60,993 nucleotides of DNA from Macrostomum lignano (GCA_002269645.1 NIVC01004088.1:1-60993); one strand, 5' to 3'; shown: positions 51,848-60,965, counted from the stretch's first letter. Notes: generated by a model not told the origin, from the letters alone. A program made the numbers and translations.

Positions 51848-53131
51848 CTGTCTATCTATCCATCTAACTATCTGTCTGTCTATCTATCCATCTAACTATC
51901 TATCTATCTATCTATCTATCTATCTATCTATCTATCTATCTATCTATCTATCTATCTATCTATCTATCTATCTATCTATCTATCTATCTATCTATCTATC
52001 TATCTATCTATCTATCTATCTATCTATCTATCTATCTATCTATCTATCTATCTATCTATCTATCTATCTATCTATCTATCTATCTATCTATCTATCTATC
52101 TATCTATCTATCTATCTATCTATCTATCTATCTATCTATCTATCTATCTATCTATCTATCTATCTATCTATCTATCTATCTATCTATATATCTATCTATC
52201 TATCTATCTATCTATCTATCTATCTATCTATCTATCTATCTATCTATCTATCTATCTATCTATCTATCTATCTATCTATCTATCTATCTATCTATCTATC
52301 TATCTATCTATCTATCTATCTATCTATCTATCTATCTATCTATCTATCTATCTATCTATCTATCTATCTATCTATCTATCTATCTATCTATCTATCTATC
52401 TATCTATCTATCTATCTATCTATCTATCTATCTATCTATCTATCTATCTATCTATCTATCTATCTATCTATCTATCTATCTATCTATCTATCTATCTATC
52501 TATCTATCTATCTATCTATCTATCTATCTATCTATCTATCTATCTATCTATCTATCTATCTATCTATCTATCTATCTATCTATCTATCTATCTATCTATC
52601 TATCTATCTATCTATCTATCTATCTATCTATCTATCTATCTATCTATCTATCTATCTATCTATCTATCTATCTATCTATCTATCTATCTATCTATCTATC
52701 TATCTATCTATCTATCTATCTATCTATCTATCTATCTATCTATCTATCTATCTATCTATCTATCTATCTATCTATCTATCTATCTATCTATCTATCTATC
52801 TATCTATCTATCTATCTATCTATCTATCTATCTATCTATCTATCTATCTATCTATCTATCTATCTATCTATCTATCTATCTATCTATCTATCTATCTATC
52901 TATCTATCTATCTATCTATCTATCTATCTATCTATCTATCTATCTATCTATCTATCTATCTATCTATCTATCTATCTATCTATCTATCTATCTATCTATC
53001 TATCTATCTATCTATCTATCTATCTATCTATCTATCTATCTATCTATCTATCTATCTATCTATCTATCTATCTATCTATCTATCTATCTATCTATCTATC
53101 TATCTATCTATCTATCTATCTATCTATCTAT
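51848..53131. repeat. (TATC)n microsatellite, about 1.3 kb
   Basis: Directly visible. Confidence 0.98.
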
Positions 53132-56100
53132 CGGTGATCTTGTGTGCGTGCTTTCAGCTTGATTGGCTGCGGCAAGCAAGCTCGAAAGAGCTCGCTTCGC
53201 TCGCTCTTTCTCGCTATCTACTATCCATAGCCAGGACCTGCACCGGAGCGGTTACGAAAATTAGATTTCTCGGTAGTTGCACGTACTCTTTTGCACTACT
53301 TGAGTAGTCTGATTTTCGTTCGGCATGGCTGGTTCCAGCAGGTAGTTCCTCTGGATAAAAGCGCTTACCGCGCCCATTGGCTTTCCAACTGCCTTAATCG
53401 TTTCCGGTGATCTTGTGTGCGTGCTTTCAGCTTGATTGGCTGCGGCAAGCAAGCTCGAAAGAGCTCGCTTCGCTCGCTCTTTCTCGCTATCTACTATCCA
53501 TAGCCAGGACCTGCACCGGAGCGGTTACGAAAATTAGATTTCTCGGTAGTTGCACGTACTCTTTTGCACTACTTGAGTAGTCTGATTTTCGTTCGGCATG
53601 GCTGGTTCCAGCAGGTAGTTCCTCTGGATAAAAGCGCTTACCGCGCCCATTGGCTTTCCAGCTGCCTTAATCGTTTCCGGTGATCTTGTGTGCGTGCTTT
53701 CAGCTTGATTGGCTGCGGCAAGCAAGCTCGAAAGAGCTCGCTTCGCTCGCTCTTTCTCGCTATCTACTATCCATAGCCAGGACCTGCACCGGAGCGGTTA
53801 CGAAAATTAGATTTCTCGGTAGTTGCACGTACTCTTTTGCACTACTTGAGTAGTCTGATTTTCGTTCGGCATGGCTGGTTCCAGCAGGTAGTTCCTCTGG
53901 ATAAAAGCGCTTACCGCGCCCATTGGCTTTCCAGCTGCCTTAATCGTTTCCGGTGATCTTGTGTGCGTGCTTTCAGCTTGATTGGCTGCGGCAAGCAAGC
54001 TCGAAAGAGCTCGCTTCGCTCGCTCTTTCTCGCTATCTACTATCCATAGCCAGGACCTGCACCGGAGCGGTTACGAAAATTAGATTTCTCGGTAGTTGCA
54101 CGTACTCTTTTGCACTACTTGAGTAGTCTGATTTTCGTTCGGCATGGCTGGTTCCAGCAGGTAGTTCCTCTGGATAAAAGCGCTTACCGCGCCCATTGGC
54201 TTTCCAGCTGCCTTAATCGTTTCCGGTGATCTTGTGTGCGTGCTTTCAGCTTGATTGGCTGCGGCAAGCAAGCTCGAAAGAGCTCGCTTCGCTCGCTCTT
54301 TCTCGCTATCTACTATCCATAGCCAGGACCTGCACCGGAGCGGTTACGAAAATTAGATTTCTCGGTAGTTGCACGTACTCTTTTGCACTACTTGAGTAGT
54401 CTGATTTTCGTTCGGCATGGCTGGTTCCAGCAGGTAGTTCCTCTGGATAAAAGCGCTTACCGCGCCCATTGGCTTTCCAGCTGCCTTAATCGTTTCCGGT
54501 GATCTTGTGTGCGTGCTTTCAGCTTGATTGGCTGCGGCAAGCAAGCTCGAAAGAGCTCGCTTCGCTCGCTCTTTCTCGCTATCTACTATCATAGCCAGGA
54601 CCTGCACCGGAGCGGTTACGAAAATTAGATTTCTCGGTAGTTGCACGTACTCTTTTGCACTACTTGAGTAGTCTGATTTTCGTTCGGCATGGCTGGTTCC
54701 AGCAGGTAGTTCCTCTGGATAAAAGCGCTTACCGCGCCCATTGGCTTTCCAGCTGCCTTAATCGTTTCCGGTGATCTTGTGTGCGTGCTTTCAGCTTGAT
54801 TGGCTGCGGCAAGCAAGCTCGAAAGAGCTCGCTTCGCTCGCTCTTTCTCGCTATCTACTATCCATAGCCAGGACCTGCACCGGAGCGGTTACGAAAATTA
54901 GATTTCTCGGTAGTTGCACGTACTCTTTTGCACTACTTGAGTAGTCTGATTTTCGTTCGGCATGGCTGGTTCCAGCAGGTAGTTCCTCTGGATAAAAGCG
55001 CTTACCGCGCCCATTGGCTTTCCAGCTGCCTTAATCGTTTCCGGTGATCTTGTGTGCGTGCTTTCAGCTTGATTGGCTGCGGCAAGCAAGCTCGAAAGAG
55101 CTCGCTTCGCTCGCTCTTTCTCGCTATCTACTATCCATAGCCAGGACCTGCACCGGAGCGGTTACGAAAATTAGATTTCTCGGTAGTTGCACGTACTCTT
55201 TTGCACTACTTGAGTAGTCTGATTTTCGTTCGGCATGGCTGGTTCCAGCAGGTAGTTCCTCTGGATAAAAGCGCTTACCGCGCCCATTGGCTTTCCAGCT
55301 GCCTTAATCGTTTCCGGTGATCTTGTGTGCGTGCTTTCAGCTTGATTGGCTGCGGCAAGCAAGCTCGAAAGAGCTCGCTTCGCTCGCTCTTTCTCGCTAT
55401 CTACTATCCATAGCCAGGACCTGCACCGGAGCGGTTACGAAAATTAGATTTCTCGGTAGTTGCACGTACTCTTTTGCACTACTTGAGTAGTCTGATTTTC
55501 GTTCGGCATGGCTGGTTCCAGCAGGTAGTTCCTCTGGATAAAAGCGCTTACCGCGCCCATTGGCTTTCCAGCTGCCTTAATCGTTTCCGGTGATCTTGTG
55601 TGCGTGCTTTCAGCTTGATTGGCTGCGGCAAGCAAGCTCGAAAGAGCTCGCTTCGCTCGCTCTTTCTCGCTATCTACTATCCATAGCCAGGACCTGCACC
55701 GGAGCGGTTACGAAAATTAGATTTCTCGGTAGTTGCACGTACTCTTTTGCACTACTTGAGTAGTCTGATTTTCGTTCGGCATGGCTGGTTCCAGCAGGTA
55801 GTTCCTCTGGATAAAAGCGCTTACCGCGCCCATTGGCTTTCCAGCTGCCTTAATCGTTTCCGGTGATCTTGTGTGCGTGCTTTCAGCTTGATTGGCTGCG
55901 GCAAGCAAGCTCGAAAGAGCTCGCTTCGCTCGCTCTTTCTCGCTATCTACTATCCATAGCCAGGACCTGCACCGGAGCGGTTACGAAAATTAGATTTCTC
56001 GGTAGTTGCACGTACTCTTTTGCACTACTTGAGTAGTCTGATTTTCGTTCGGCATGGCTGGTTCCAGCAGGTAGTTCCTCTGGATAAAAGCGCTTACCGC

Positions 56101-60270: not shown

Positions 60271-60965
60271 TTATCTATCTATCTATCTATCTATCTATCT
60301 ATCTATCTATCTATCTATCTATCTATCTATCTATCTATCTATCTATCTATCTATCTATCTATCTATCTTATCTATCTATCTATCTATCTATCTATCTATC
60401 TATCTATCTATCTATCTATCTATCTATCTATCTATCTATCTATCTATCTATCTATCTATCTATCTATCTATCTATCTATCTATCTATCTATCTATCTATC
60501 TATCTATCTATCTATCTATCTATCTATCTATCTATCTATCTATCTATCTATCTATCTATCTATCTATCTATCTATCTATCTATCTATCTATCTATCTATC
60601 TATCTATCTATCTATCTATCCTATCTATCTATCTATCTATCTATCTATCTATCTATCTATTATCTATCTATCTATCTATCTATCTATCTATCTATCTATC
60701 TATCTATCTATCTATCTATCATCTATCTATCTATCTATCTATCTATCTATCTATCTATCTATCTATCTATCTATCTATCTATCTATCTATCTATCTATCT
60801 ATCTATCTATCTATCTATCTATCTATCTATCTATCTATCTATCTATCTATCTATCTATCTATCTATCTATCTATCTGTCTGTCTATCTATCTATCTATCT
60901 ATCTATCTATCTATCTATCTGTCTGTCTATCTATCCATCCATCCATCTATCTATCTATCTATCTA
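60271..60965. repeat. (TATC)n microsatellite
   Basis: Directly visible. Confidence 0.98.

Follow-up and report, generated by a model that had tools for sequence, protein, structure and literature searches.

A decayed Penelope-like element and an orphan 273-bp array within one long (TATC)n tract of Macrostomum lignano, and their possible origin in two separate events

A microsatellite locus of Macrostomum lignano, in which a decayed Penelope-like element (PLE) and a 273-bp tandem array are both embedded in (TATC)n, has been analyzed within a 60,993-nucleotide stretch of the genome (GCA_002269645.1, NIVC01004088.1:1-60993; the whole stretch is called the window below). An even chance is given here to an origin in two separate events within one long (TATC)n tract, namely an old PLE integration and the later arrival of an orphan satellite joined to the tract by homology. 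In the first event, a PLE that appears to be of the Neptune type would have integrated by target-primed reverse transcription (TPRT), in a 5'-truncated form, probably together with a long TATC tail that it brought or produced. In the second event, which would be recent or recently homogenised, the orphan 273-bp sequence would have been established as a 16-copy array upstream in the tract, its right junction arising from homology between a unit-internal 12-mer, CTATCTACTATC, and the tract; a DNA-level route appears most likely, for example satellite integration or amplification at a fragile microsatellite via extrachromosomal circles or unequal exchange. This order is suggested by the state of the two inserts, the PLE copy being decayed and dead whereas the array is nearly perfect.

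Tandem Repeats Finder (TRF) and direct reading gave the same arrangement that a sequence-only reading of this DNA had proposed, namely (TATC)n, 273-bp array, (TATC)n, 5'-truncated PLE and (TATC)n, with all three tracts and both inserts in one orientation, that of the TATC strand (+). The left tract, (TATC)~320, occupies 51851-53132 (99% matches in TRF); its left edge is degenerate at 51851-51896, where the variant map reveals TGTC, CATC and TAAC variants and where the 20-mer TGTCTGTCTATCTATCCATC lies at 51873-51892. It is followed by the array (53133-57595; 16.35 copies, 99% matches) and by the middle tract, (TATC)~127, at 57596-58111, which is pure according to TRF and the variant map and is closed by the degenerate block TGTCTGTCTATCTATCCATCCAT (58089-58111) directly before the 5' junction of the PLE. 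The PLE itself comprises about 2.16 kb of unique sequence (58112-60271), and the right tract, (TATC)~173, extends from 60272 to 60965 (97% matches) and is the least pure of the three, with five small interruptions and two TGTCTGTC blocks. TRF itself delimits the array at 53132-57592 (16.3 copies) and the middle tract at 57581-58108. It is very improbable that the order, the tract lengths or the copy number of the array were mis-assembled from long reads of near-identical repeats: assembly is difficult for 16 identical 273-bp units and for pure tetranucleotide tracts of kb length, and the small indel-type interruptions of the right tract could be read errors, but every junction is clean and unique, the degenerate blocks show internal consistency, and the sequence carries no signal of a chimeric join.

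The PLE recognized in the sequence-only reading is genuine. Its reverse transcriptase (RT) matches Pfam RVT_1 (E=5.4e-10), with PKIHK, GRP/IVS and YIDDIF motifs legible in the three-frame translation, and its linker and GIY-YIG core align with those of intact relatives. In a search of proteins at E<=1e-10, 799 homologs with RVT_1, HTH_animal and GIY-YIG Pfam domains were obtained, among which the metagenomic protein P0001 is the closest (71% amino acid identity), followed by P0009 (57%); the remaining homologs lie near 45% identity and have fishes and a nemertean among their sources. The copy begins within the RT and is therefore 5'-truncated, and it continues through the linker and the GIY-YIG endonuclease domain into the 3' untranslated region (3'UTR). 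With at least four frameshifts and two in-frame stops in its reading frame, this copy is dead. Upstream of the GIY-YIG domain, translation and alignment revealed a zinc-finger-like CX5CxxC linker (C GNLSC RPC, 59217-59243, +), whose counterpart in P0001 is C-X3-C-X2-C; a CX2-5CxxC linker at this place is a feature of the Neptune and Nematis clades (PMC8557442). The element is hence assigned to the Neptune type, an assignment that comes from the linker and the ~45% identity to fish PLE proteins rather than from a phylogeny. The GIY-YIG domain (IYVGETGG ... RRRRNMEQKLIALL, 59376-59630, +), located downstream of the RT, is interrupted by a frameshift and has a weak Pfam score (E=0.036, 14.8 bits vs a cut-off of 22.6 bits); it is counted as present in spite of this sub-threshold score because core residues, including YVGETG, R436 and HLSDI, do not vary between this copy and the aligned intact relatives P0001 and P0009.

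Neither a second copy nor a flanking repeat of the element, as expected for a pseudo-long terminal repeat (pLTR) or partial-tandem organization, was found; the sole repeat is an internal 163-bp x2 tandem duplication (59767-60089, +, 97% matches), which spans the end of the open reading frame (ORF) and the start of the 3'UTR. The absence of a pLTR leaves the membership in PLEs intact, because 5'-truncated solo copies are common among these elements. Judged by its sequence, the insert has the canonical features of an endonuclease-containing (EN+) PLE, apparently of the Neptune type, with the exception of the pLTR organization. In addition, a second PLE fragment, which belongs to another family and is more decayed, is located at ~7960-9520 on the minus strand (..LQYIDDIFGDW.., FFKPTDSRE..); no simple repeat was seen 3' of this fragment, and no hammerhead was found in it.

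When the 3'UTR of the PLE was compared with that of the relative L001, a minimal hammerhead ribozyme motif (min-HHR) of type I became apparent (CC-CUGACGA-A-GACC(loop)GGUC-GAAA-AUUUC-GG, 60170-60205, +). The Rfam covariance models gave no match to it, even at E<=10, and a descriptor scan written for this reason detected it nowhere else in the whole window. In this motif A9 is followed by an additional nucleotide, G10.1 pairs with C11.1, and helix III is near-palindromic, the same three features that are listed, together with a descriptor, in PMC4209133. It is kept in the relatives L001 (1872-1911), whose helix II carries G-C where the window copy has A-U, and L011 (~194-232), and in a consensus fold of only these three sequences helices I and II persist, 7 of 11 pairs having changed in both partners. 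The PLE 3'UTR carries a min-HHR motif, a predicted ribozyme, that is conserved with compensatory pairs. A search with a degenerate hammerhead pattern for further 3' ends of this PLE lineage in genome and viral contigs gave zero matches.

As the earlier reading had it, the right end of the PLE runs into (TATC)n: its last unique bases (...TTTCGCAT) pass straight into TATC without an intervening unique base. Relatives were obtained through contigs that encode homologous proteins (11 loci), and five copies (L001, L005, L008, L011 and the window copy) have a simple repeat no more than about 250 nt past the ORF stop. In L001, the closest relative (71% amino acid identity), the 3' end merges into (TCTCTCTG)n ~245 nt past the stop codon; compared with the window copy, the hammerhead region is well conserved and the last 45-55 nt are divergent. 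L008 is flanked by (AT)50 upstream and (AT)73 downstream, and L011 has a degenerate telomere-like (CCCTAA)n just downstream of the ORF (listed at 4521-4610). A degenerate (CCCTAA)n was also detected downstream of the ORF in L005, where repeats occupy 42-344 and 4323-4628 within a repeated flank of the element; because it belongs to this flank, it was not counted as a target. An insertion bias of PLEs toward microsatellites has been published, i.e., toward (TA)n for Naiad and toward (CA)n and (C)n for Chlamys, and the linker has been hypothetically linked to this bias of Neptune-type endonucleases (PMC8557442). The PLE in (TATC)n fits a further instance of this published association rather than a new behavior. 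Like other Neptune-type EN+ PLEs, it combines 5' truncation with a minimal type I hammerhead in an untranslated region (PMC4209133) and with a simple-repeat association hypothetically tied to the linker (PMC8557442); it differs from them in the repeat, (TATC)n instead of the reported (TA)n, (CA)n and (C)n, and in showing just the internal 163-bp duplication and no visible pLTR or partial tandem copy.

How the TATC came to stand at the 3' end can be approached from the edges of the tracts. An exact copy of 58051-58111, i.e., 61 bp of (TATC)n plus TGTCTGTCTATCTATCCATCCAT, is found at 60882-60942 (+) in the right tract, which stops within 23 bp after this second copy, so that the PLE body and ~610 bp of TATC are enclosed by a 61-bp direct repeat. 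The repeat is a candidate target-site duplication, and hints at an element with a long TATC tail. In the simplest reading, the site of entry would have been the original tract's degenerate right edge, and the element would have brought or made the long TATC tail. The right tract being the least pure of the three fits an age as great as that of the decayed PLE. The 61-bp repeat lends some support to the view of an element that carries or makes TATC. A target-site duplication of ~670 bp, in which the middle and the right tract would be the same sequence, was also considered and is less likely than a tail plus a short duplication, given the five interruptions of the right tract and the purity of the middle one.

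The earlier proposal that the GATA strand primes on a template ending in CUAUC is an assumption. PAc, a Poseidon element and the only PLE reconstituted in vitro, nicks AT-rich DNA, and its reverse transcription begins internally, at a site without homology to the nicked DNA (PMC11167929). By likeness to microsatellite-specific long interspersed elements (LINEs) and telomere-associated PLEs, an annealing of GATA to a UAUC end as primer is plausible.

The array is near-perfect in sequence: over 4.46 kb it departs from the consensus only twice, by G257A in copy 1 and by the loss of 1 bp in copy 6. With CTATCTACTATC placed at the end of the unit, the array consists of a 97-nt 5'-truncated copy (53133-53229) and 16 full units. 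The last copy of this TATC-like 12-mer (57584-57595, +) forms the junction between array and tract: internal copies continue with CATAGCC, and the last one merges into the tract. The 12-mer is the only TATC-like stretch of the unit, and a right junction at this place has a probability of ~2% for a random phase. Because the right junction falls in this 12-mer, its sequence points to a homology-mediated join, whether by way of RNA or of DNA. At the left junction, the microhomology amounts to 1 nt. The defined right end that had been described for the array is a unit-internal CTATCTACTATC, which resembles the tract, rather than a demonstrated RNA 3' end.

The unit has a GC content of ~50%, and its plus-strand RNA is predicted to fold at -104.7 kcal/mol (z -5.3), the predicted fold of the minus strand being weaker (-93.5, z -3.8). 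In a dimer of the unit, no hammerhead (CUGANGA...GAAA with a helix II) was found on either strand with one core mismatch allowed, in a scan whose control finds the PLE motif. Rfam gave no match at E<=10 on 10 kb including the array and, on the unit dimer, a chance-level RAGATH-8 hit alone (12 bits vs the 87-bit threshold), and no tRNA gene was predicted in the whole window. A decayed hammerhead in the unit, suggested by the shared 8-mer CGAAAATT, was rejected, as this 8-mer is an arm of a long intra-unit hairpin and the CUGANGA box is absent. Regarding other copies, an exact 23-mer of the unit was absent from the metagenome, genome and viral contigs searched, an exact look-up of the ORFs of the unit and the PLE in a collection of 15 billion proteins gave no match, and neither did a HMMER search of the 63-aa unit ORF against 1.84 billion representatives.

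A short motif is common to both inserts. The array motif TGTGCGTGCTTTCA occurs once per unit, in 17 copies from 53143 to 57510-57523 (+), and it is matched at 13 of 14 positions by TGTGCGTGGTTTCA in the PLE (60250-60263, +), which bears out the earlier observation. Allowing no more than one mismatch, the 61 kb contain the motif in the 17 array copies, in the PLE and at no other place, against 0.05 occurrences expected for a fixed 14-mer. It had been placed shortly upstream of the TATC in both inserts, but the distances are unequal: in the PLE it ends 8 nt before the tract, and in the array 61 nt separate it from the junction after 57595, or 57 nt when the tract is taken to include the last 4 bases. 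When the unit was compared with the 182-nt 3'UTR of the PLE, the local score was reached by 44 of 1000 dinucleotide shuffles (p ~0.04), and a colinear alignment was at chance level (588 of 1000 shuffles); this comparison covers the 3'UTR only, and the unit may be related to the 5' part of the PLE family, which lies outside it. In a BLAST search of the unit against the whole PLE, the 13/14 match has an E value of 0.24, and an unrelated match is better (0.07). The motif is not conserved among relatives, being absent from all eight loci scanned (L001-L008); at its position L001 has merely a loosely similar GT-rich stretch, and the 3' terminus diverges.

These findings bear on an alternative that builds on the earlier reading, in which the array is a passenger of the PLE: the PLE enzyme would copy a multimeric or circular 273-nt RNA, starting at a nicked (GATA)n strand annealed to CUAUCUACUAUC, and rolling round the template would produce 16 identical copies and a ragged 5' end. 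The array can indeed be read as one 5'-truncated copy and 16 full units that all end in the TATC-like 12-mer, its copies are near-identical, and the 13/14 motif is confined to these two elements in 61 kb; in addition, the unit length and the tandem form resemble non-LTR retrozymes, for which mobilization by PLEs has been proposed (PMC7229834; bioRxiv 10.64898/2026.07.22.740005). However, neither a hammerhead nor another known self-cleaving motif is present on either strand, and retrozymes resemble the pLTRs of PLEs, whereas the unit lacks colinear similarity to the PLE 3'UTR. The distance from motif to end is unequal (61 vs 8 nt), the motif is missing in L001-L008, the array seems young and the PLE copy has long been dead, no second copy of the unit occurs in the collections searched, and PAc starts reverse transcription without target homology (PMC11167929). 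With no hammerhead, no meaningful Rfam match, one marginal 14-mer and no other copy found, the passenger claim was not upheld, and such an origin is regarded as unlikely.

Several observations nevertheless weigh against two separate events. Both inserts share one orientation, the homology junction of the array is on the same side as the 3' end of the PLE, the 13/14 motif is common to both (p ~0.04), the plus-strand RNA of the unit is predicted to be strongly structured (z -5.3 vs -3.8 for the minus strand), and the unit has a size typical of retrozymes; all of these lean toward a passenger. Furthermore, TGTCTGTCTATCTATCCATC, a 20-bp part of the block that ends the 61-bp repeat, recurs at the far-left edge of the locus (51873), so that the supposed target-site duplication may instead reflect a recurring variant of tract edges or a duplicated tract. 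There is one copy of each insert in a background of ~8% TATC/GATA, which makes targeting and chance inseparable, and two other kb-long GATA tracts (22229-23050 and 34151-35650), of opposite orientation and with unique flanks, are free of inserts.

The same background favors the view that neither insert was targeted, as long microsatellites are large, neutral, break-prone and tolerant of insertions, and that it was the pattern that drew notice. Of the window, 28.8% (28 intervals) consists of tandem repeats, with (TATC/GATA)n alone accounting for 7.9%, and simple repeats cluster in the region of 50-61 kb; in a genome of this kind, arrays commonly form at the DNA level and a chance landing in TATC is not rare. 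The similarity of the motifs is also marginal. On the other hand, the PLE 3' end is fused to the repeat without a unique base between, as in relatives with other repeats, the array ends at its sole TATC-like motif (~2% for a random phase), and the microsatellite bias of PLEs is documented (PMC8557442). Coincidence appears improbable, to about the same degree as a passenger origin.

Compared with known systems, the array shares several features with metazoan non-LTR retrozymes, which are ~150-1000 nt tandem repeats with type I hammerheads and circular RNA expression and are proposed passengers of PLEs (PMC7229834). It is arranged head-to-tail, its 273-nt unit falls in the ~150-1000 nt range, its RNA is predicted to be structured, it co-occurs with a PLE, and a rolling-circle origin would account for its identical copies. 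In contrast, it has no hammerhead or other known ribozyme, a GC content of ~50% and no similarity to the PLE untranslated region, and it is known from DNA alone. The PLE-linked tandem passengers known so far, the non-LTR retrozymes, are defined by their hammerhead (PMC7229834). The array, in which none was found, should not be filed among them; it could still work like a retrozyme. Satellites that spread by extrachromosomal circles or unequal exchange resemble it in the homogeneous array of an orphan unit, the microhomology junction and the array-filled genome, and differ in that here the unit is embedded in one microsatellite, has the orientation of a retroelement, and yields an RNA predicted to be unusually structured.

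There are also non-LTR retrotransposons specific for microsatellites (general statement in PMC4640811), among them Waldo of the R1 clade at ACAY repeats, Mino at AC and Dong at TAA repeats. Their first-strand synthesis is presumed to begin with annealing at the nicked repeat. The PLE resembles them in a 3' end that carries the repeat of the target, with a seamless junction. They differ in having an AP-like or restriction-like endonuclease and a LINE RT, and in a specificity derived from many copies, compared with one here. In telomeric PLEs that are deficient in endonuclease (cited in PMC8557442), and in telomerase, the primer of a PLE/TERT-lineage RT is a DNA 3' end whose repeats pair with a complementary repeat of the template, and this is a precedent for a PLE RT that makes or uses a repeat tail; the element in the window differs from these in having an endonuclease and a chromosome-internal position. 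A reiterative synthesis of TATC by this PLE would be speculation by analogy with them.

The locus is one more example of a published pattern, since both the microsatellite bias of PLEs and their tandem passengers have already been described. For its novel part, a ribozyme-free passenger, the positive support consists of one marginal motif and the shared orientation. A long shot would be that the unit is a new ribozyme-less PLE passenger, a structured RNA inserted by rolling-circle TPRT from nicked (GATA)n paired to the internal CUAUCUACUAUC, and that the lineage also lays telomerase-like microsatellite tails, which would help to build the kb-long GATA tracts. The bracketing repeat and the family-specific terminal repeats of the PLE lineage are the parts of most interest. 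The locus bears on the target choice of PLEs and the origin of their tandem RNA passengers. A lineage with members that have different terminal repeats (here TATC, TCTCTCTG, AT and CCCTAA-like) would be a good test system, in which it could be tested whether the linker or the 3' repeat of the template sets the target and whether a telomerase-related RT extends microsatellites.

Other features were observed elsewhere in the window. Many of its repeats are minisatellites of 11-49 bp, and simple repeats include (ACT)205 at 50028-50644 and (TGAC)66 at 40711-40975. Large, intronless sacsin-like ORFs lie at 257-6433 on the minus strand (Pfam SACS domain, 3.5e-69), and a 504-aa part of them gave no hit in the protein collection at E<=1e-20. 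At 16765-18905 (+), a 28-bp x18 minisatellite lies between an SH2-like exon and one for a tyrosine phosphatase (Y_phosphatase, 3.8e-50), and the best homologs of the latter exon are 38-40% identical and spread across vertebrates and fungi. A rhodopsin-type G protein-coupled receptor ORF (33106-34092) ends ~60 bp before the 1.5-kb (TAGA)375 tract at 34151-35650. Further mobile-element remnants are represented by a non-LTR RT ORF at 9628-10608 (+), a second RVT_1 fragment at 14249-14992 (-), read as gypsy-like, and a Tc1/mariner-type DDE_3 fragment at 37782-38120 (-), and a channel exon of an ionotropic glutamate receptor is found at 48545-49021 (-).

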